DNA of 64,000 bases from Octopus sinensis (lineage: Eukaryota). The notes beneath the pieces are model-generated. The model saw only the letters and a program-made list of their open reading frames with translations, was not told the DNA's origin and did not search any database. The position numbers and the translations under genes are program-made. The stretch spans positions 68,076,001 to 68,140,000 of the forward strand of contig NC_043003.1 in NCBI RefSeq assembly GCF_006345805.1, read 5' to 3'. This document shows, in pieces, positions 14,875 through 62,979 of the stretch. Positions within the stretch are counted from its first letter, which is position 1; the number at the start of each line of letters is the position of its first letter.

Positions 14875-15884
14875 GGCTAGCGATTTCGGGGGAGGGGGGC
14901 ACCGGCGATTACATCAACCCCAGTACATCAAGATAGCCGAAATACCGCTAAGCATCGACTCCAGCATTCGCCTGGTACTTATTTTATCGACCCCCAAAAA
15001 TAATGAAAGGCAAAATTGACTGCGGTGAATTTTGAACCCGGAATGTAACGACAGACGAACTGCCGCTACGTAGTTTACCCAGAAAGCTAACGGCTCTGCC
15101 AGCTCGCTGCCTTTCCTGAAAATAACAATGCTTTATACTATTTTATTGACCCCGAATGATGAAAGGCAAAGTCGACCGCTGGAATTTGAACACAGATTGT
15201 AAAGACGAGTAAAATACCTATTTCTTTACTAAGCACAAGGGGCTAAAACAGAGAGGACAAACAAGGACAGACAAACGGATTAAGTCGATTACATCGATCC
15301 CAGTGCGTAACTGGTACTTAGTTGATCGACCCCGAAAGGATGTAAGGCAAAGTCGACCTCGGCGGAATTAGTACTCAGAACGCAGCGGCAGACGAAATAC
15401 TTATTTCTTTACTACTCTAAAGGGGCTAAACACAGAGAGGACAAACAAGGACAGACAAATGGATCAAGTCGATTATATCGACCCCAGTGCGTAACTGGAA
15501 CTTAATTTAATCGACCCGAAAGGATGAAAGGCAAAGTCGACCTCGCCGGAATTTGGACTCAGTACGTAGCGGCAGACATAATAAATCTATGCATTTCGCC
15601 CGGCGCGCTAACGATTCTGCCAGCTCGCCGCCTTTAAAGTTAGGCGAAATAACTATTTCTTTACTACCCACAAGGGGCTAAACGCAGAGGGGACAAACAA
15701 GGACAGACAAACTGATTACGCCGGTTATATCGACTCCAGTGCGTAACTGGTACTTAATTTATCCACCCCGAAAGGATGAAAGGCAAAATCGACCTCGGCG
15801 GAATTTGAACTCAGAACGTAACGGCAGACAAAATACGGCTACGCATTTCGCCCGGCGTGATAACGATTCTGCCAGCTCGCCGCC
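14875..15884 (-). mobile_element. Head-to-tail cluster of SINE family B copies
   Basis: Units at 14875-15114, 15145-15217 (fragment), 15218-15400 (5'-truncated), 15401-15634 and 15653-15884. They share gagttcaaattccgccgaggtcgactttgcctttcatcc, and the last three carry the gtcccctct...gccccttgtgggtagtaaagaaata-type tail. Confidence 0.92.
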
Positions 15885-15934
15885 ATCGTCTTCAGTTTAA
15901 CATTGAATTGTTTTCATAATTCGACGTCACAACA

Positions 15935-26350: not shown

Positions 26351-26562
26351 TAAGGCGGCGAGCTGGCAGAAAGGTTAGCACGCCGGGCGAAATGCTTAGC
26401 AGTATTTCGTCTGCTGCTACGTTCTGAGTTCAAATTCCGCCGAGGTCGACTTTGCCTTTCATCCCTTCGGCGTCGATAAATTAAGTACCAGTGAAAGACT
26501 GGGCTCGATATAATCGGCTAACCCCCTCCCTGTTTCAGGCCTTGTGCCTATTGTAGAAAGTA
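26351..26562 (+). mobile_element. SINE family B, full length, with the caggccttgtgcctattgtagaaag tail variant
   Basis: Head aaggcggcgagctggcagaaaggttagc; B box gagttcaaattcc. Confidence 0.92.
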
Positions 26563-27394
26563 TTATACACATTGTGTTACCAACTAAATTAAACAACGTA
26601 CTACTTTTGAAGTTTGTGAGAATTGGGTTTTCACAGATTGTGCTTGCTATATATAACAAGCCGACGTATTGCACTCTCGTAGATATTTCAGTGGTAGTTA
26701 TATAAAATATAATTCACACATTTTATCACAAATTCTTTGATATCCAAATACAAATATGTAAACAAATATAAATATGAATTCATGGCTCTGAAATCTTCTA
26801 AGAGTATGAATATGTATTCGATTGAACTAATATAAAACTTTATGTATCATCAAAAATAGAAAATGCAGTTACACTTTTCCTTGCATTCTAAATAGTGTTC
26901 AAAGTTAGCATCCTTTGATATATTTCAACAAAACTAATAACATTTGTCACAGGTTGATATTTTTGTATAAATCTGACTTACTCCGAGAGTGGCTCTAATA
27001 GAAATGTTTTAAAATAGTAAGTTCCACACATTTTCTGTGGTGAGGGGGCATGGTTAATACTGCCTTCGTAATTGATTGTTCCATTCATCATTCCGTTTTG
27101 ATGAATGTATGACAGTCAGGTTCCGAGTGAACTTAAGGTGTTCTACAAAGTTTGAACCCAAATTGATAATAAATTAACGTAAAGACCCTTGCCTTTTATT
27201 TTATGCTGTGGTTTAATCCTTGATGAATTTTCTTTTTTATCTCACTGTGTGGAGAAATGAAATTAAACTAATACTCTAGAATTGATATTATAGACTAAAC
27301 AATTCCGCTAAAATTATACATCCGTCATTATATAGTACGATATTCCTACGTATTTAATGAAAACTATAGAAGCGAAACCGAAACAGGTCACATG

Positions 27395-42883: not shown

Positions 42884-43519
42884 CAACAAGCAAATGCACC
42901 CATGTTTGGACGGTGTAATTTATTATTAGGGTGCACTCCTGTGGATGCTGAAAGTTGAATTAGCTGCAGTTAGAAGTTGTTTCAAGTTGACAAGCGTAAA
43001 ATGTATAATTGCCATTTGCGTTAGGAGTTTATCATATGGTATTAATAAACTTAGGGAATGAATGAATGTTTTTCAATGCAAAATTGGCTGTTAGTAATAA
43101 ATGAAAGTCCACGAAATGAGATCGCAAATGCAGTAGGCATTAGGGATCCTATATCTTACTTGAAGCGTTTTGTATCATGTAACTATTTTTCTCGTAATGC
43201 CTGACACAACCACATTGAAGCCTTTTTTTTCCCACGAAAGCCATGTATGATAGAGAAAGGCGAAAATTTATAGCGAACACGCAAATAGAATAATGGCATG
43301 TACAAAACTAAATGTCAGAGCATGCTTATGAGCAAACAGTATGCGTGAAATATGAAGGGTCATTGAAGGTAATGTACTGTTAACAGCAATCATGGAAATG
43401 AAGCAAAATATGAATGAAATGTTTGCAGGAAGTTTGATTGCTAACGGCTACAGTTTGGCGTAGATGTGAAGAACGCGGTAGAGGAATAGTAACTGTAGGG
43501 CTGTTTTGTAGACAACGTT

Positions 43520-44960
43520 TTTTGTTTCTCCTACAGGAGCACAGATGAATAAGTTGTCTGGATGGCCAACTCTGGAACAACTGACGTAGAATTGTCGATA
43601 TGAAAAGCACGATGTTCGAAGGTCCAATCTGACAACTTGCAGCGAATAACCTTGTGCTTTGTTAGTTGTCATGACGAAGCTGAGTTTCAGATGGAACAGC
43701 AGTCTCTGCATAGGGTAGGTGCAGTCTGTTGAGGTTAGCGGAATTTTCGGATAGAAAACAGTATCATTTTTGCAGTGTCCCGTGGTAATTTGGGCTTCAA
43801 TGTCGTGATCCATCATTTGTTTGACCACACAGCGTGTTCCATTGCATAGTATAGGTGCGTTTAGATTGAGAGGGCAACCGACTTTTAAGTGAAGATCATG
43901 GAGAGAAGGAGTCCTGGAGGATCTTGGGAGTTGATAAATTCTGTTGGAAAGTGCGTAACCTGATCGAGAACTCTGTGTCAACTGATTAGTAACAACGTTC
44001 TTGAGAAGGTAGCCGACTAAGTCGTGGTTAAGAGTGTTGACAGCTACATTTGCTGGTGCAAGAACAGCCCTGTCGCGAAGCCAACCTGGTTTTATGTAAT
44101 CCGGTGTAAGATTTGTGTAAACGGCAGAACATTATGGCTGGAGGCAGTGTGGCCAATGGTGGTAGTGTCAATGTATCTGTTGCCGTCAGACATAATTTGT
44201 TCATTGCCGATCTTAAGGAGCATTTCTGAAAACTGAATTGTAGGCTGACTAGTCTGTAGGAGTAATCACATGTTGATGGGGGGGGGGTCTCGATTGGACA
44301 TGCGTCCAAAGGAGGGATTTTTCAAAACAGGCATTATGTTCGTCAGCGGGTGTTTCGATGGGTATAATAGGCAGAGTGTGCCGAAAATCTCCTGCAAGAG
44401 GTAGAGTCACATCTCCAAGGATGCTGTTGTTTGATCTAAAGACTCTCATCGTAGGATGAAGTGCTTGTAGGAACATTTATGGGACATAATTGCTTCATCC
44501 TGAACAATGAGTTTCCACTTTTGCAAAAGTGTCGCTTCGTCCGAGGAGTGCTTTATGTGGCACATTGGGTTTTCTTAATGTATTACGTTGAAAGGCAATT
44601 TCAAGACAAAGTGAGCTGTCCGTCCACCGCCGAGAAGAGCCGAGACTGTTCCTAATGAGACAACAGCAATGGCAAGGTCACCATTATGCCGCAACTTCGC
44701 AAGAAGAAGATTCAAGAGGAATGTTCTTCCATTCCAACCGGGTGCGTCTAAGAAGATGATTCCGCGAGTGTGTGTGTTGATGTTTCTGAGGACGAATAGT
44801 ATATGTGAGCTTGATCGAAATTGAGAAGGGGTTTATTGTCTGCATTGTTCTATTTGAGTTGGAGGATGTTGTAGGTTGTTTTTTCTGAAAATGAGGTGGT
44901 ATACACACACGCACACACACACTCACCCTCTGACCGTTACTTCGCAGATTTACCTCCCTT
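43520..44960 (-). mobile_element. Helitron PIF1-like helicase region, decayed
   Basis: Walker A region FLDAPGWNGRTFL, then GGRTAH, LAGDFRHTLP, LKVGCP..LCNGTR, LSFVMTTNKAQGYSL and QFYVSCSRVG; no Rep domain in the window. Confidence 0.92.
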
Positions 44961-51871: not shown

Positions 51872-52240
51872 TGATGAACTGGCAGAAACGTTAGCACGCT
51901 GGGCGAAATGCGTAGCCGTATTTCTTCTGCCGTTACGTTCTGAGTTCAAATTCCGCCGAAGTCGAATTTGCCTTTATCATTTCGGGGTCGATAAATTAAG
52001 TACCAGTTACGCAATGGGGTCGATGTAATCGACTTAATCCGTTTGTCTGTCCTTGTTTGCCCTCTCTGTGTTTAGGCCCTTGTGGGCAGTAAAGAAATGG
52101 GTATTTCGTCAACCGCTACGTTCTGTGTTCAAATTCTGCCGAGGTCGATTTTTCCTTTCATCCTTTCGCGGTCGATTAATAAGTACCAGTTATTAAGCAC
52201 TGGTGTCGATATAATCGATTTAATCGGTTTGTCTGCCCGT
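51872..52240 (+). mobile_element. SINE family B head-to-tail dimer
   Basis: Full copy to the tail ggcccttgtgggcagtaaagaaatg, then a second unit starting gtatttcgtc. Confidence 0.9.
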
Positions 52241-52836
52241 GTTTGTCCTGAAATTATTGCCACAAAAACATGTCACTGCGGACAAATACATGAGATTTAT
52301 ATTAAAGTGATTTATATCAACATTGCATTGATTCCACATTTAGCTTGAATAGTACCATGGATTTCTCATCAGTTGATAAATAAATCATTCAGAGGTACGG
52401 AGTTTTGAAACGTGTGATCTAAAAAGAAACACGAAAGAAAATATCGAGAATTATTTTCAATTAAATAATTACAACAGAGCAATACAAAGCCCATATTACC
52501 ATTGATGCGTTGGGAGATGCATTATTAGAAAAGTAATCTTGCATTTAGAATGAATTCGTTATCTCTGCTTCCGTTTGCTGCGAACTATGAGGTTTGAAAT
52601 TTCAACTAACGGGATTAAATATTCCACACGTTTCCTAACTATATTAGTTTAGATCATATTTATATTAACGCAAACTTTTTTTATTATTCTGTCAGTATAA
52701 ATAAATATCGAAAGTTCGTATCAAAAGGAAGATTTCTGATCAACACTATATTTTATGTATATATATATATATGCGTGTATATGTGAGCATGTTCGTGCAT
52801 GTGTGTGTATATAGACACACACACTCACTTATATTT

Positions 52837-52925: not shown

Positions 52926-54424
52926 TATATATGGATGTATACATGCATATATATATATATGTGCGTGTGTATGTATGTATATGCATGTTTTTTGTATATG
53001 TTCCTGCGATTCCTGATTTACTGGATTACAAATTTAATGATGAAATGGAAACAATCTTCTTTCATTTCAAGTATTAAGCGTAAGATTTTGCATGAATATC
53101 AAACATGTAAATGTCAATATAATCTTGTAACTTCTTTTCCCAATTTGTTAGTGTTTTATTTAAGAATTTAAGCCATGAGTAATATTACAGATGACAAAGA
53201 AAGATGTAAATCTGAAATTAAATGTAGTTATTTTTTTCAGTTTAAAATCAGTATATTTCCAGAAATAACGTTAAGAATTAGAATTACAATGTTATTACTT
53301 TGAATGGAAAACAGGAAAAAACAAAGTTAAAAATATATTCAATTGATGTAATAGAAATAATTTTATATCTTCTTTTTGCTACACTATGTCATGCATTTTC
53401 TATTTGTCGCATAGAGTGCCCTTTCTTAAATTCCAATATTTTATGCAACGTGGTTATTTATTGGCAATATCCCTCAGAAAATTGCCTCTAATTGATAATT
53501 ATTACATGCGTGCCAACTTGAAGTAAATCCAATGAAAAAGGAGCGATATAAAAGGGAAAGTAAAGAGGAAAATGGATTATGCAATTAAATGAAGAATACA
53601 CGAAATCTAATACTTTCAAATATATACATTAAGTTCATTTAAATTGTTATATAAAATATATAGCTCAGGTAAACGTCTAAGAAAGGTAGGCTGGCATTGA
53701 TTTCCGTTTCCAGCTATTTCGTCTTATTGCATAATTTCATCGACAGTAATTTTCGAGAAAGTATTTAAGACCTCAAAAGTTCCTTGAAATGTGTGTTGTC
53801 GAAACAATTCGAAAATTTGTTAGGAAAATATGCTAGGAAAAGCAAAATCGGAATCCAGATATGATAAACGAATCGGAAAAGAAGTGATAAAGAAGGCAAA
53901 TCAATATTTAATTAAGTGCTACGTTAAAGTACGGAGACCCAGTATACACAGGACATGCTATGTCTTAAAAACCCAAGTAGATAGCACCTAAGTGTTATTA
54001 TAAGGCATATAGGGATTCAATGTTTTTTTTTCGCCAATAAATATACGGTTGTTGGTATCTACTCTCTATGAATTTGCCTATTTTGGCTAACGGTACAATA
54101 TGCTAATGATTTTCAATAAACCCATGTGTCGAAAATCTACCTTACACTAATTTCTGAGAGAATTGAAGATATAATCAATAATAAATCTCTGAGCTAGATG
54201 TAAGCACTAGCTGCACGACATTGTAAAGTATATTTGCCACCTAAATGTGGCTGACCCATATGGGACGATGTAGATTATAGCCCCAGAAAGCTGGCTAACT
54301 GCACACTGTGTGTACCCGACCAGTATTTGCGAAGGGAAAACATCGTTCCCATCTCTAGCCTGACGTGACACACACGGCCCTGGGTTTCTAGGGGGTAAGC
54401 TTTCACCAGCGTGTGACAATATCC

Positions 54425-56645
54425 GGCTTCTCTCCTTATTATAGGCACAAGGCCTGAATACAGAGGGGATATACACAAACATACGCGAACAAAAGAAATA
54501 CATATGAAAGAAGGAATTACAATGAATTCAATTATAATGAATATGAGACGTGATTTCTTTTTTGCAATTAAACGTTCTTACAGTCTTTTTTCTTTTTTTC
54601 CTTTTTTAGCATGTTCTTTTTCTTAATCTTCTAATTTTTTTTGTATCATTTTTTCTTTATACATTTTAACAGTCTATTTCCATGGTTTTTTTTTTTATGA
54701 AGTACAAATTTTACTTATTTTTAAATTTTCATAAACGGTTTCAAATCTTCTAATTCCACGACAGGCTCGTCAAACTCGACTTCAACTCCCAGCGGATCTA
54801 TGAAAAGTCCATACATTTCTCTCAATTTCGAAAATCTCTCTTTATTTATCACTAATCCTTTAGTGTATTCCGGGTATTTTCCTGGCGGCAGCTTTTCTCT
54901 TATTACTGATTTAAATTTTACAATCGTTTTCTCTATTTCTTTACTTTTGGAATACGTTACCAATTGCCACATATATATTTTCCTTTTCACTTCTGTTTGC
55001 TTCGGCTCCCGTCCTGATCTGTTCGGGCGTGAAGAAACATCATAACCAATTTTATAATCGCTTCCTTTTTCTCCCTGTTGTAAAACTGTTTTTTCCTTTG
55101 TGTCTTCTTCCACTACAGCTTCTGTTGGTGCTTTACAATTATTTCTCTTTTCTTCTTTCCCATCTCCTTTAGCCTTTTTTGAATGTCTGGGGGAGAATTC
55201 ACCCGTTCCTTTCTCCTCCTCGTGTTTACTACTGTAAAGGGTGCCTCCACTCTATCTGTCACTTTCGTTGGTACTACCTCTTCGGTATTGTTTTCTTCTC
55301 TTTTCTTCTCCTCTTCGTTTTCCTTCTCGGGACATCTTGGTTTCATGTGCCCCTTTTTGCCGCATAGGCAGCATGTTGGTATTCTTTCTATTGTTATTCG
55401 AAGTCTGCTGTCTTCCGGGAGTAGTATTCCCTCCGTTATACGGATCATTTCGGTTTGAACGGCAGTTTTTTAAAATAATTTCCACGTAACTAAACACTTT
55501 TAAACTTCGTATACTAGTAGAATGTGTTTATAAAACATCATTTTTCTCTTGGCTTTATTGAGAAAATTCTATAGTTTGTAAGATATTCGTTGTTTTTTTT
55601 CTTCAAGTTCTACAATTTCAACCAATCAATGATGTCTATTTAGGTGAAAACATTCTGTTCTGTATGAATATGTCCCTCGTTTGAGAAACAGATTGGGTTT
55701 ATTTACATTTCTGAAGAAAAAAAGATACCCTTCCCCCACACCTAACCAACCCTAACCCTAAAACAGATCGAAATTCAATAGATCGATACTAGGGTCATAA
55801 TTATGGGTGACAATTTCATATGACACCGCTAGAAAAAACTGCCGTTCAAACCGAAAAGATCCCGTTATACTATGCAAGTCTTCCAAAGATACTTGCATGG
55901 TCACTTCGAGGCTATATCCCTACCAGTTGGACTTTGGGATCCTCGTTATCATGAGGATCTCTACCCCATCCTTCATATCGTGCATTATGGCTGCTACGAG
56001 CCATTCTTCGCGATTTCGGTGGGCACTCTTTCAACTCTGACTGCGCGTTTGCCACAGTAAAGCAGAAGTTGTATCCAGTTCGTTGTCTGTAACGGCTCCG
56101 TGGAGTGGTTTATGGTATCTTCATCGTTGCCAAACCTTAATTCTACTGAGCCATACTTTCCACGTGTATAGAATGTGGTCAATTTTTTTCACATTTTCGA
56201 GGCATTCCTCTATTTCTTCTGTTGGGGCTAACACCATCTTGTTCGAGGACATAGACAACGTTTTGTATACTACCGTCCTCTTCTCTATGATTTTCATCAG
56301 TTCTTCTGGGGGAGTCAGTTTTAGACTGGTTCCCTCCTTTTTTTACAAATTTTCTTCCTTCCTTCCTCTTTCTTGTGTCAATTTCTATTTCCTGTACTTC
56401 CAGGGTGTTGGCATTCATTCCTTGTGTCATTGCCACTGCGTAACTTTGTCTATTCTCCATCTTTCTTCACTCTTCGTGTAGACGGGGATTATACAGGTGC
56501 AAAGGAAACAGTGACTGAAATTCAATAATTTACACAATCATCCAATGAATCTTGGTTCACCCGAGCGGTGAAACCTACAGCAAACATACAATATCAGTGC
56601 ATAACAATTTGAACTCACATCGAAGAGATCACAACAAACACCCAT
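54425..56645 (-). mobile_element. Apparently full-length ORF1-only (HAL1-like) Tx1/L1-clade element, family 1, interrupted by a MITE
   Basis: 5' UTR of about 185 bp; ATG at 56460; frameshifted ORF1 (..TEPLQTTNW..YCGKRAVRVERVPTEI.., knuckle CCLCGKKGHMKPRC) that reads through EDLHSIT|EGILLPED once the MITE and one TSD are removed; stop at 54721; about 290 bp of UTR ending caggccttgtgcctataataagg; no ORF2. Confidence 0.85.
55442..55862. mobile_element. Merlin-like MITE, 421 bp
   Basis: TIRs ggatcatttcggtttgaacggcagtttt / aaaactgccgttcaaaccgaaaagatcc; 8-bp TSD cgttatac (55434-55441 / 55863-55870). A GG terminus with an 8-bp TSD fits Merlin; hAT or P is not excluded. Confidence 0.85.
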
Positions 56646-56659
56646 TAGTGACAATCACC

Positions 56660-57533
56660 GGCTTTCTCTTTATTATAGGCACAAGGCCTGAATAGAGAGG
56701 GGACATACACAAACACGCGGGAACAAAAACAAAACATATGAAAGAATGAATTACTGTGAATTCAAATATAATGAATTTGAGACGGTTTTCTCGGTCCCGC
56801 TCCGAGACGAAACCGCGATTTCTTTTTTACAATTAAACGTTCATACAGTCTTTTCATTTTTATTTCCTTTTGTTCTTTTTCTTAGTCTTTTTGTTCATTT
56901 TTTCTCTTTTTTTTTTCAACTTTTTAACAGTCTATTTTCCTCATCTTTTAATATGAAGTACAAATTTTACCTACTTATTTTTAAATGTTCATAAAGGGTT
57001 TCAAATCTTCTAATTCCACGACCGGCGGGAGCTCGTCAAACTCGACTTCAACCCCCAGCGTGTCTATGAAAAGTCCATACATCTCTCTCTCAATTTCAAA
57101 AATCTCTCGTTGTCTATAACTATTCCTTTCGTATATTCCGGGTATTTTCGTGACGGCAGCTTTACTCTTATTACCGATTTAAATTTTACAATCGTTTTCT
57201 GTTTCTTTATTTTTGGAATACGTGACCAAATGCCACTTATATCTCTTCCTTTTCACTTCTGCTTGCTTCGACTCCCGTCCCGATCCGTTCGGGCGTGCAG
57301 AACCATCATAACCAATTCCACGAACGCTTCCCTCTTCTCCTCGTTGCAATGCCGCTCCATCCCGCGTGCCCTCCCTCACCACTGCTTCTGTTGGCACCCA
57401 CAACCACCTCTCCCCCTCCAGCCCCCTTGACCGTCTGGGGGAGAACTCCCCCGCTTCCCCTTCTCCCCGTATCTTCCACCGTGAAGGGCACCCACCACTC
57501 CATCCGTCTCCCTCGCCGACACCACCTCTTCGG
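56660..57533 (-). mobile_element. 5'-truncated second copy of the family 1 ORF1-only element, head-to-tail upstream of the full copy
   Basis: Collinear with about 54425-55290 (ORF1 C-terminus ..WHLVTYSK..FIDTLGVEVEFDE, same UTR, tail caggccttgtgcctataataaagaga). Confidence 0.88.
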
Positions 57534-58708: not shown

Positions 58709-59137
58709 GGATCATTTCGGTTCGAACGGCAGTTTTTTCTAGCGGTGTCTTATGAAATTGTCACCCATAATTATGACCGTAGTATCGATCTATTGCATTT
58801 CAATCTGTTTTAGGGTTAGGGTTGGTTAGGGTTAGGGGTGGGTGGAAGGGTATGTTTTTTTCTTCACAAATGTAAATAAACCCAATCTGTTTCTTAAACG
58901 AGAGACATATTAATACGGTACAGAATGTTTTCACCTCAATAGACGGTCATTGATTGGTTGAAATTGCCGAAATGTAAGAAATTAAAGACCAAATATCTTA
59001 CAAACTATAGAATTTTCTCAATAAATCCAAGTGAAAAAAAGATGTTTTATAAGCACATTCTACCAGTATACGAAGTTTACAATTTTTTAGTTACCTAGAA
59101 ATTATGTTAAAAACTGCCGTTCAAACCGAAAAGTTCC
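58709..59137. mobile_element. Merlin-like MITE, 429 bp, second copy in opposite orientation
   Basis: Same TIRs; 8-bp TSD tcaactta (58701-58708 / 59138-59145); internal sequence is the reverse complement of 55442-55862. Confidence 0.88.
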
Positions 59138-60739: not shown

Positions 60740-60945
60740 ATCTACTCGGCCTCTATTCGAAAAGGATGTAACGCAAATCAACCTCCACAGAATTTGAACT
60801 CGGAGCGTAAAAACGGAAGAAATACCTGCTGCTTGCGAACGGTTCTGCTAGCTTGCTGCCTTTGTTCTCAGTTTTGACACAAGTCCAGTAATTTCGGGAC
60901 AGGAATTAGTCGATTACAATGACCCCCAAACCCAAATGGTACTTA
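60740..60945 (-). mobile_element. Degenerate SINE family B pieces
   Basis: aaggatgtaacgcaaatcaacctccacagaatttgaactc...ggttctgctagcttgctgcctt; tail-like gtcgattacaatgacccc. Confidence 0.55.
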
Positions 60946-61129
60946 ATGCAGTTCGATATTTAAGAAATGAGGAATTATGTAAATTATTTACATTATCTAC
61001 ATTTGACGTATAATCGTCCTCATCGAGTTTGTTGTTAACACAGCGTTTAGGCCGATGTGACCTCCAGGCTTCATCAGGTATCTTGGGGAAATCTCGAACC
61101 TTGTTTCTCCTTCCTAAGATATTTTTCGA

Positions 61130-61130
<1 letters not shown>
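60945..61130 (-). mobile_element. SINE family E tail (hammerhead-core repeat), no head
   Basis: Reverse complement is collinear with 62715-62915; followed by (TTA)n. Confidence 0.8.
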
Positions 61131-61166
<36 letters not shown>

Positions 61167-61604
61167 TTTTTTTTTTTTTTTTTTTTCCTTCTTTCTTCAA
61201 ATTTTCTTCCGTTTTTCACCGAGTGTTTTCTGTACACCTAGAGCAGAGAAGCTCCTTGTATGCATTCCCAGATTAAACACGCAAATTCACAGATAAAATA
61301 TGTATTTAAAAAATTAATAAATAAATAAATTCATGAATGGATGTTGTTTTCACAGCGATAATGCTCTTCTCAGTACATGAGCCGTTCCAGTTAACACGAT
61401 ATTTTGCACCTCCTGTGGCGATGGTAAGCCTGGTATCATTTTCAAATAGGTTTCAATACCTTTCTTTTATCATTCCTAGAGATCCTACAATCACTGCTAC
61501 TGTAGTCGCCTTGAGATACTACAGTTTCTATTACGAAGTCTTTATATTTACTGATCTTGCCAAATTCTTTATTATTATTACTATTATTATTGCTATTATT
61601 ATTC

Positions 61605-61670
61605 AGGTCACTGCCTGGAATCGAACTCGGAATCTTGGGGTTAGTAGCAGGCGCTCTTAACCGCTACGCT
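61605..61670 (-). mobile_element. tRNA-like head of SINE family E
   Basis: Minus strand gcgtagcggttaagagcgc...ccgagttcgattccaggcagtgacctg, then (AAT)n. Confidence 0.75.
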
Positions 61671-61689: not shown

Positions 61690-62610
61690 AATGACATCGA
61701 AAAATACCTTATGAATGAGAATCCAGGTTTGAAATTTCACCAAAGCACCTGATGAAGGCTGGATGTTCCGACGTACATTCAAGCCGAAGACACTGGACAA
61801 CTTCCAGAAGGTCTCTGGCATGGCAATGCTACAGAGGAGCTCTACCTGTTCGGGATAAACTCGCAAGGCACGGTGGCCGAGACAGTACGATATGTCCAAG
61901 ATGCGGGCGGGATAGGGAAACCGTCCCGCACGCTATTGTTCATTGTCCGGACGTGTCTGAGGTGTGGGTTTATGCCGAAAAGCTGTTGTCAAGTACACGA
62001 AGAGTACAGCTGTAGACTGAGTCGATTACAAAAATTGACCCACCGGATTTCCTCGCGAATGAAGGTAAGTTTCGTTTTCTCGTTGTAGTAGCAATTGCGA
62101 AAGAGGTGATATGGAAGACGAGAATGAAAGGTCTACAGTCAGGCAAGTTCATCTCCGGCCCTGGTTTGGTGAATTATTTCATCTTTCACCTGAAAAGGAA
62201 GATAGGGCTGGAGAGAATATGCCTGACTAAGAGAGTGTATGAAGAACGATGGAAAGATGTAGCACGAAAGTTGCGAGTGAATGATACAACATAAATGTAA
62301 CACCAAACGAAACCAAAAGTATCAGTGGGGAGGCGAGGCTCGTGGGGTCTGAGCTAAACCCGCACCCACTCCACCCGTAATGTCTTCCGGTATGTTCCAA
62401 CATTCGATTTCTTGCTATTTTTGTAAATTTCTGTAAATTTTTAAAATTCGCTTTTTTGTAAAACCCATTCGTGTGTCTGACCCCATCATCAGATTGTATT
62501 GTCCCCTCTATGTGGCCCGTAGTGGGTAATAAAGAAATAACCTCATGAAGGCTGGAGTGTATATCATCCGAAAAATTATTTTAATAACAAACAGCATGAG
62601 TACAAATAAT
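61690..62610 (+). mobile_element. SINE family E tail split by a Tx1 insertion (halves 61690-61763 and 62540-62610)
   Basis: Collinear with 62715-62850 after removing the insert. Confidence 0.75.
61764..62539 (+). mobile_element. 5'-truncated Tx1/L1-clade LINE: ORF2 C-terminal zinc-binding domain plus 3' UTR
   Basis: RSLAWQCYRGALPVRDKL...CPRCGRDRETVPHAIVHCP..VW, AKEVIWKTR; stop at 62293; tail gtgggtaataaagaaata; 17-bp TSD acct(g/c)atgaaggctgga (61747-61763 / 62540-62556). Confidence 0.92.
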
Positions 62611-62612
62611 CA

Positions 62613-62915
62613 TGGGCACATGGCGGATTGGTTAAGAGCGCGGATACTAACTCCTAGATACCGAGTTCGATTCCAGGCAGTGGCCTAAATAGTAATAATA
62701 ATGATAACAACAACAACAACAACACCAACAACATTGAAAAATATCTTAAGAATGTGAATCCCGGTTCGAAATTTCCCCAAGACTCCCGATGACGGCTGGA
62801 GGGTATATCAGCCGAAACGTTGTATTTACTACAATCAAGATGAGGACAAATATCCGTCAAATGTATATAATGTGAATAATGTACATAATTCCTCATCTCT
62901 TAAATATAGAACTGT
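62613..62915 (+). mobile_element. SINE family E, full: tRNA-like head, (AAT/AAC)n, hammerhead-core tail
   Basis: A box tggcggattggttaagagc, B box gagttcgattcca; tail gactc-CCGATGA-c-ggctg..cagcc-GAAACGTT-gta (62781-62826). Confidence 0.82.
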
Positions 62916-62979
62916 ATTAATCGTAAGAATATATTAATAGGAATTTATGGTAGCGTTTCAAATTTTCCTTTGGTAGTAT

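Follow-up and report, generated by a model that had tools for sequence, protein, structure and literature searches.

A hairpin-bearing 3′ tail common to an L1-superfamily LINE and a SINE family in octopods

Introduction

Near the end of a 64,000-nucleotide (nt) stretch of the Octopus sinensis genome (NCBI RefSeq assembly GCF_006345805.1, contig NC_043003.1, positions 68,076,001 to 68,140,000 of the forward strand; this whole stretch is called the window below, and positions refer to it) lies a truncated copy of a long interspersed element (LINE) whose last nucleotides, 62499-62539, resemble the ends of a family of short interspersed elements (SINEs) in the same window, called SINE B. The locus raises the question of what such a common end means: whether it belongs to the LINE at all, whether the small hairpin within it is maintained as a structure, and whether it ties the SINE to the LINE for its mobilization. 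An earlier note, made from the letters of the window alone, had proposed that a Tx1 LINE, two families of "half-LINEs" and SINE B share a 3′ tail with a covarying stem-loop and form one stringent mobilization network. The analysis presented here favors, with reasonable though far from complete confidence, the reading that 62499-62539 is the 3′ tail of a stringent-type LINE and that SINE B has borrowed the module as its own tail.

In LINEs of the stringent type, the LINE protein binds the tail RNA and reverse transcription starts from a fixed site; SINE RNAs that carry this tail serve as templates in trans (Kajikawa and Okada 2002; PMC4176376). This mechanism is textbook knowledge; the new part is an L1/Tx1-type partner in octopods, and the gain is incremental. 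In Octopus vulgaris, SINEs and LINEs each account for ~12% of the genome, and of the 900 recently active SINE families 893 are unclassified (PMC13282606); naming the LINE partner of one abundant family would aid SINE classification and the dating of bursts. Specific shared-tail SINE partners are rare in the L1 clade (3 out of 58 pairs), and the three named examples are all non-animal (Ohshima, PMC3472496). An animal case would strengthen the view that L1-type elements originally recognized their tails stringently and relaxed this requirement later.

The LINE Copy and Its 3′ End

The LINE copy occupies 61764-62539 (+), a dead, 5′-truncated insertion of 776 bp that was recognized by tblastn and its zf-RVT domain and is delimited by a target-site duplication; it consists of the C-terminal remnant of open reading frame 2 (ORF2) of an L1-superfamily, putatively Tx1-like, LINE followed by the 3′ untranslated region (UTR) and the tail. 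An ORF2 from Argonauta matches the window at 61806-62276 (56%, E = 2e-50, tblastn). The ORF2 C-terminus is read in frame 1 from 61650, contains a zf-RVT domain (PF13966, E = 7e-9), and is interrupted by a single in-frame stop at 62013-62015; the translated fragment that adjoins the LINE end matches proteins of Octopus sinensis and Argonauta hians. The reading frame ends at 62294, leaving a 3′ UTR of 245 nt (62295-62539, +) with conserved blocks that are common, in a UTR alignment, to the LINE 3′ UTRs of O. sinensis, Argonauta and a Sequence Read Archive (SRA) contig.

Two hairpins lie at the end of this UTR. The upstream one, TCTGA-ccccatca-TCAGA at 62476-62493 (+; RNAalifold, columns 17-36), was found in LINE 3′ UTRs only, including those of O. 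sinensis and the SRA contig, and is absent from SINE B. It is followed at 62494-62539 (+) by the tail module that blastn, nhmmer and a covariance model all identify as common with SINE B: TTGTCCCCTCT, a spacer, the second hairpin, and AATAAAGAAATA, which is also the exact 3′ end of the copy. The end string ttgtcccctct-atgtg-GCCC-gtagt-GGGT-aataaagaaata is present at 62499-62539, and within it the hairpin at 62515-62527 (+) pairs 62515-62518 with 62524-62527 (GCCC/GGGT; G.U, C-G, C-G, C-G) around the loop GTAGT at 62519-62523. The copy ends in ...AAAGAAATA without poly(A), straight at the 3′ copy of the target-site duplication (ACCTCATGAAGGCTGGA, 62540-62556, +), of which 16 out of 17 positions are identical to the 17-bp 5′ copy (ACCTGATGAAGGCTGGA, 61747-61763, +). 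Stringent recognition would lead one to expect such a precise end without poly(A).

Since SINEs are dense here and the LINE lies between two copies of another SINE-like repeat, the LINE might only seem to share the tail, with an adjoining or nested SINE B fragment supplying it. The 17-bp duplication, however, delimits a single insertion that runs from the ORF2 remnant through the UTR to the tail, which makes the tail integral to the LINE; five LINE copies from other genomes likewise have the module contiguous with homologous 3′ UTR blocks; and no SINE B body is present at this site. The explanation by an adjacent SINE is therefore already contradicted, and we give it hardly any credence.

The flanking SINE-like repeat belongs to a second family, which lies around the LINE copy as inverted arms at 60943-61176 and 62687-62920 (79% over 234 nt). 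Its members contain a tRNA-like segment (ggttaagagcgcgg...gttcgattcc) and have tails of AAT/AAC microsatellites. Inverted similarity around the copy also extends to 61600-61663 versus 62630-62691.

Distribution of the Tail Module

Within the window, the LINE end and the SINE B tail align over 48 nt at 81% identity (E = 2.8e-5, blastn), and nhmmer recognizes the SINE B tails with E-values from 1e-11 to 6e-16 and the window LINE tail with E = 3.6e-12. A covariance model (R1) was built from ten tails, excluding both the window LINE and all tails with an AGGC/GCCT stem. It recovers 44 tails in 137 kb and matches the excluded window LINE with 32 bits (E = 2.6e-5). The claim of the earlier note that the LINE and SINE B share a LINE-derived 3′ tail is thus borne out. 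Matches of the model to the AGGC/GCCT tails are weak (E = 0.0033 and E = 0.16 for copies a and b of a ~885-bp repeat, the "half-LINEs" of the earlier note, and E = 0.036 for a SINE B variant).

The module forms the last ~45-48 nt of the LINE and is built as follows: TGTCCCCTCT, a spacer of 5-8 nt, a 4-bp hairpin with a 5-nt loop (usually CUUGU), and then AAUAAAGAAAU(A). Loci outside the window were fetched through matches to the LINE protein, and those named L003, L050, L052, L055 and L056 end before the tail. The same module closes the 3′ UTRs of five further L1-like LINEs: one in O. sinensis (L001), two in Argonauta that represent two LINE families (L002 and L049), one on the SRA contig (L004) and one on a metagenome contig (L054). 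It is also carried by a truncated Argonauta LINE copy (L002:4728-4850) and by ~30 SINE-like tails in 43 kb of Argonauta DNA. In the Argonauta-type lineage the module ends in terminal (ATT)n, with at least 28 ATT repeats in L054.

Several of the module-bearing Argonauta SINEs also share the central domain of the octopus SINE B. These ~65 nt (15720-15790, -; ccgaggtcgattttgcctttcatcctttcggggt.gataaattaagtaccag) recur at several places of L002 and L049 with 73-80% identity and can be recognized as a conserved SINE core domain; a search for the sequence of this domain in the text of papers returned nothing relevant. Because both the central domain and the tail are common to Argonauta and octopus SINEs, this SINE lineage, tail included, is old within the octopods. 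A cuttlefish LINE (L053), whose ORF2 is 35% identical, gave no tail match. Rfam 15, including the UnaL2 3′ element, yielded no family match, with two sub-threshold chance matches in 62250-62600 and one in 15180-15930. When metagenome contigs were scanned with a stem-free pattern of the tail, all 43 of the 43 matches were chance hits in unrelated sequence and were discarded.

Pairing and Covariation of the Tail Hairpin

Hairpins with a 4-bp stem and a 5-nt loop occur by chance at a rate of 0.86 per 40 nt in the window, so that one hairpin of this size carries no weight; the stems count as evidence only because they occupy the same position in a homologous tail. At this position GGCC/GGCT is found in the O. 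sinensis LINE and most Argonauta SINEs, GGCC/GGCC in the L054 LINE and one Argonauta SINE subfamily, GCCC/GGGT in the window LINE and SINE B, AGGC/GCCT in the ~885-bp repeats and the SINE B variant, GACC/GGTC in the truncated Argonauta LINE, and AGCC/GGCT with a 4-nt loop (aggt) in the second Argonauta LINE. With GGCC/GGCT as the reference, changes to both partners of a pair convert pair 2 to C-G or to A-U and pair 3 to G-C, while single transitions preserve pair 1 (G.U to G-C or A-U). The window LINE and SINE B have the second pair swapped with respect to the O. sinensis and Argonauta elements, and pair-preserving variants were found outside the window as well, namely GACC/GGTC in a LINE tail, GGCC/GGCC in the L054 LINE and AGCC-aggt-GGCT in the second Argonauta LINE.

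In the model alignment of the 44 tails, 88.1% of the cells are paired compared with 39-56% when the partners are slid. The covariation score is 0.201, compared with 0.146 after shuffling (none of 500 shuffles reach the observed value) and at most 0.087 with slid partners, and 12 cells have both sides changed where shuffling gives 2.7. The pair counts are GU:29, AU:6 and GC:5 for pair 1, GC:29, CG:3 and AU:1 for pair 2, and CG:32, GC:3 and UG:2 for pair 3. The clearest signal lies in the counts of stem types: each of the four that were seen at least twice is fully paired (GGCC/GGCT in 16 tails, GGCC/GGCC and AGGC/GCCT in three each, GCCC/GGGT in two), and 17 out of 20 singleton types are mismatched. 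Given that 6 of the 23 types are paired, the chance that all three recurrent non-consensus types pair is ~0.011. In a simulation all four pairs were kept with a frequency of 0.13 after two stem substitutions and 0.068 after three, which amounts to ~0.003 for the three recurrent variants jointly. Such a contrast between paired recurrent types and mismatched singletons would arise if the hairpin is maintained in master elements and decays in inserted copies. Overall, it is likely that the tail hairpin is a selected structure, and we infer that this structure is one of RNA rather than DNA.

A number of observations weigh against this conclusion. The stem has only 4 bp, the folding z-scores of single tails are mixed (-2.75 to +0.29), and the RNAfold optimum of the window LINE tail differs from the hairpin. 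Independent compensated events are few, about three double changes and three single pair-preserving transitions, and two of the double changes are those that had drawn attention to the tail in the first place, which makes the test partly post hoc. Two LINE copies have one unpaired stem position each (UGCC/GGCU in Argonauta copy A and AUCC/GAGU on the SRA contig), and the SINE B copy with its hairpin at 52075-52087 pairs in a slipped register only. The counts were made on an alignment that had been fitted to the structure; aligning AGGC/GCCT to the other types requires an indel, and nhmmer picked another register for it. Finally, the sample is small, with a total of ~190 kb of octopod DNA covered.

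The frequency of such hairpins by chance, the z-scores near zero in several tails, the small number of independent events and the mismatch in each of the two LINE copies would all agree with an alternative in which the shared LINE-derived tail is real and its primary sequence is what is conserved, with the paired stem changes being coincidental. The conserved parts could be the CCUCU box, CUUGU, or the AAUAAAGAAAU block, which holds a polyadenylation hexamer and the start site of reverse transcription. The loop and the flanks are indeed better conserved than the stem. Yet the stem, although the least conserved part in sequence, is paired in all recurrent types and mostly not in singletons; double changes hit partner positions three times, including in data that the earlier note did not contain; in the second Argonauta LINE the stem is still paired although its loop differs and has 4 nt; and the joint chance of these pairings is ~0.003 or less. 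Conservation of primary sequence alone accordingly appears unlikely, and a selected hairpin is preferred. The earlier note's description of a stem that changes in sequence and stays paired holds insofar as compensated substitutions occur at a homologous position; it fails for the half-LINE family 2, whose stem is not homologous, and has to be qualified for the SINE B copy that needs a slipped register.

In several tails RNAfold lengthens the hairpin by two further helices, one between UCU of the CCUCU box and AGA, the other between UGUU or UAUU and AAUA of AAUAAAGA. This hypothetical longer hairpin has ~11 interrupted base pairs, includes the polyadenylation hexamer as its 3′ strand and fits most tails. 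Its outer helices show high pairing and little covariation, need register shifts in some families, and were derived from the same sequences.

SINE B Copies, Tail Subtypes and Arrays

The window contains about nine copies of SINE B. A full-length copy lies at 15654-15884 (-), with the hairpin GCCC-cttgt-GGGT at 15678-15666 and a score of 56 bits (E = 1.5e-11) under the covariance model. In the same head-to-tail array it is accompanied by a copy at 15403-15632 (-) with a decayed hairpin, GCCC-cttta-GAGT, and by a unit at 15219-15400 (-) that starts from about position 55 of the SINE and whose hairpin has decayed to GCCC-cttgt-GCTT. A further copy at 51876-52098 (+) has the tail AGGCCcttgtGGGCAG (54 bits under the model); its hairpin at 52075-52087 is a mismatched GGCC/GGGC in the common register and GCCC-ttgt-GGGC in the slipped one. 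The SINE tails have no A-runs. Motifs that resemble an A box (GAGCTGGCAGAA) and a B box (GAGTTCAAATTCC) are visible in SINE B by eye; ARAGORN detected no tRNA in the window and Rfam gave no tRNA match in the SINE B array.

That two tail subtypes occur on one SINE B body, as the earlier note had it, is upheld by the copy at 26354-26566 (+). It is 88% identical to other SINE B copies over 165 nt, after which the tail switches to the AGGC-cttgt-GCCT type (hairpin 26537-26549), and it is bounded by a probable target-site duplication (10 out of 11 positions). The two tail types on one body, together with the matching stems of LINEs and SINEs in the same genome, fit a repeated capture of tails.

SINE B units are arranged head to tail at 14954-15884 (-) and 51876-52248 (+), with periods of 184 and 252 in Tandem Repeats Finder. 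All four of the four GCCC-type tails in the window are directly followed by (R)GTATTTYG, which corresponds to SINE position ~55 (junctions near 15653, 15402, 15218 and 52100). As these tails run into SINE-internal sequence rather than unique flank, no duplication marks the true 3′ terminus of SINE B, a further point that weakens the case for a borrowed tail. The arrays could go back to a master element that was a dimer, to new copies integrating into older tails, or to local duplication.

The second of these possibilities bears on a different role for the module, which may act mainly at integration: the 3′ end, which in the Argonauta-type lineage carries (AUU)n, would anneal to sequence resembling it at the nicked target, new copies would home to old tails, and the tail would be conserved for priming and targeting. 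Besides the arrays at 15884-14954 and 51876-52248, an Argonauta array at L002:4994-5362 is consistent with this role (157-bp units, 2.3 units at 96% identity); in it the hairpin tail is directly followed by the next tRNA-like head. At L002:4689-4899 the ATT repeats that close a SINE tail are directly followed by a truncated LINE, which consists of ~130 nt of 3′ UTR, the GACC/GGTC tail and (ATT)17.7. The LINE tails themselves terminate in (ATT)n, with 28 or more repeats on L054, and many Tx1-clade elements are target-specific (PMC4494074). On the other side, neither the window LINE nor the SINE B variant at 26354-26566 has related flanks or a duplication that resembles the tail, the arrays with 96% identity may be local duplications, and compensated stem changes are left unexplained. 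A role mainly at integration is thus improbable, and it is compatible with, rather than opposed to, a tail that is recognized as RNA and borrowed by the SINE.

Affiliation of the LINE

The type of LINE involved can be judged from a near full-length relative in Argonauta (L002). It encodes a 639-amino-acid ORF1 protein with a CCHC knuckle (CHRCGLPGHIRSGC) and an ORF2 protein with the domains Exo_endo_phos (E = 5e-11), RVT_1 (E = 2e-18) and zf-RVT (E = 6e-8). The best solved relative of this ORF2 is human L1 ORF2p, both for the reverse transcriptase (RT) half (E = 5e-22) and, collinear with it, for the half comprising endonuclease and linker (E = 8e-13); R2 proteins score far lower. The window element is, by its sequence, a member of the L1 superfamily. 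We further infer that it is probably of the Tx1 type. Only membership in the superfamily is established, because the apurinic/apyrimidinic endonuclease (APE), RT, zf-RVT and ORF1 do not separate Tx1 from other L1 lineages; the homologous proteins that were retrieved bear no clade labels. In the repeat annotation of O. vulgaris, L1-Tx1 is the sole L1-type LINE among the recently active families (PMC13282606), and L1-Tx1 is also listed in the octopus repeat annotation of PMC8967140.

A protein that is 60% identical to the Argonauta LINE ORF2 (P0011) bears the name "zinc-binding domain-containing protein" and is assigned to a metagenome-assembled genome of Herbaspirillum. It most likely represents cephalopod LINE DNA that was binned into a bacterial genome.

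Proposed Mechanism and Known Systems

Taken together, a LINE/SINE partnership of the stringent type is probable: it fits because the two elements share a specific tail with a small hairpin near its end, and because the ends are precise, without poly(A), and carry terminal (AUU)n in the Argonauta-type lineage. Under the proposed mechanism, the LINE ORF2 protein would recognize the RNA of the tail, in which the hairpin would be the structural element. Target-primed reverse transcription would begin at a fixed position just past the tail and would not need poly(A), and SINE transcripts with the same tail could then be copied in trans. If SINEs keep capturing tails from contemporary LINE lineages, stem variants would become common to the LINEs and the non-autonomous elements of the same genome, and master elements would hold the stem paired through compensated changes as inserted copies decay.

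The closest parallels in organization are eel UnaL2/UnaSINE1 and zebrafish ZfL2-1 and ZfL2-2 (Ohshima and Okada; PMC4176376), in which the SINE tail is likewise homologous to the last tens of nucleotides of the LINE 3′ UTR, the hairpin near the end has a variable stem and a conserved loop, and the short, defined 3′ end does not require poly(A); the octopod counterpart of such an end includes (AUU)n in the Argonauta-type lineage. The fish LINEs are L2-clade elements with stems of ~6-10 bp, whereas the octopod partner is of the L1 superfamily, has a stem of 4 bp, and its function is putative. Within the L1 clade, a 3′ end shared by LINE and SINE is known from maize LINE1-1_ZM with maize and sorghum SINEs and from Chlamydomonas L1-1_CR with SINEX-3_CR (Ohshima 2012, PMC3472496), where the stem-loop also shows compensatory mutations and a conserved loop. 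These pairs differ from the octopod elements in belonging to plants and a green alga, in the poly(A) ends of the Chlamydomonas pair and in their unrelated sequences; the octopod lineage ends in AAUAAAGAAAUA or (AUU)n.

For crocodilian Tx1-Mar/SINEU, mobilization of a SINE by a Tx1-clade LINE has been proposed (Kojima 2015, PMC4494074). The link there was deduced from a shared target preference and all SINEU families have poly(A), while the link here is a shared hairpin tail without poly(A) and the Tx1 placement is tentative. Mammalian L1 with Alu/B1 resembles the octopod LINE in its APE and RT architecture, in long target-site duplications and in providing, with ORF2p, the best solved relative. 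Unlike mammalian L1, which needs poly(A) and has no shared tail, the octopod copies lack poly(A) and have a specific shared tail; with no poly(A) at the duplication-defined end and a specific tail present, the window copy does not correspond to a relaxed, mammalian-type L1. Bivalve SINEs use four other LINE clades in a study that makes no mention of Tx1 (PMC11481361). No octopod SINE with an L1/Tx1 tail was found described in papers, a search to which Repbase and Dfam did not belong.

A more far-reaching joint reading would combine these elements. The 4-bp hairpin would be the tip of the ~11-bp interrupted hairpin, formed between the conserved UCU/UGUU of the CCUCU box and AAUA/AGA of the AAUAAAGA block, so that the recognition structure encloses the polyadenylation hexamer of the element itself; much of the SINE expansion specific to octopods would be driven by a stringent L1/Tx1-type LINE; groups of LINEs and SINEs with co-evolving specificity would be told apart by their stem variants; and integration would be biased to earlier tails or ATT repeats, building the SINE arrays. 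As a whole this reading is speculative and rather unlikely to hold.

Other Repeats in the Window

Each string quoted in the earlier note was found at its position in the window, namely 62499-62539, 15678-15666 (-), 56689-56677 (-), 54455-54443 (-), 26537-26549 (+) and 50594-50582 (-). Not all of the elements behind these strings belong together. The "half-LINEs" with the AGGC/GCCT stem are two copies of a ~885-bp repeat, copy a at 56648-57533 (-; AGGC-cttgt-GCCT at 56689-56677) and copy b at 54413-55285 (-; 76% identical to copy a, hairpin at 54455-54443). The candidate interpretation as half a LINE, in the form of an ORF1-only element, was rejected, as the repeat has no homology to ORF1 or ORF2 and contains 21 stops in one frame alone. 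Both copies begin at the same repeat position, and their similarity runs ~17 nt beyond "...aataaagaga", so that the tail-like motif is subterminal, ~17 nt before the end of the repeat. The "half-LINEs" are best described as a discrete non-coding repeat with a subterminal tail-like motif. No autonomous element with an AGGC/GCCT stem was found among the ~190 kb of octopod DNA. Family 2, which the earlier note had included in the network on the basis of the stem TACC-tttat-GGTA (50594-50582, -), was dropped: its tail is matched by neither the profile nor the covariance model, and the stem is at chance level.

One of the ~885-bp repeats is bracketed by inverted arms at 55634-55862 and 58709-58944 (91-93% over 104-130 nt), which suggests a larger rearranged or duplicated segment. 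The window as a whole is AT-rich and full of microsatellites and short repeats. A search for a host gene in the window found none; all ORFs of at least 150 amino acids are either unannotated or a Pif1-like Helitron fragment. The latter refers to an ORF of 177 amino acids at 43448-43981 (-), which shows weak similarity to the 2B domain of Pif1 helicase (E = 1.8e-4) and is probably a fragment of a Helitron.

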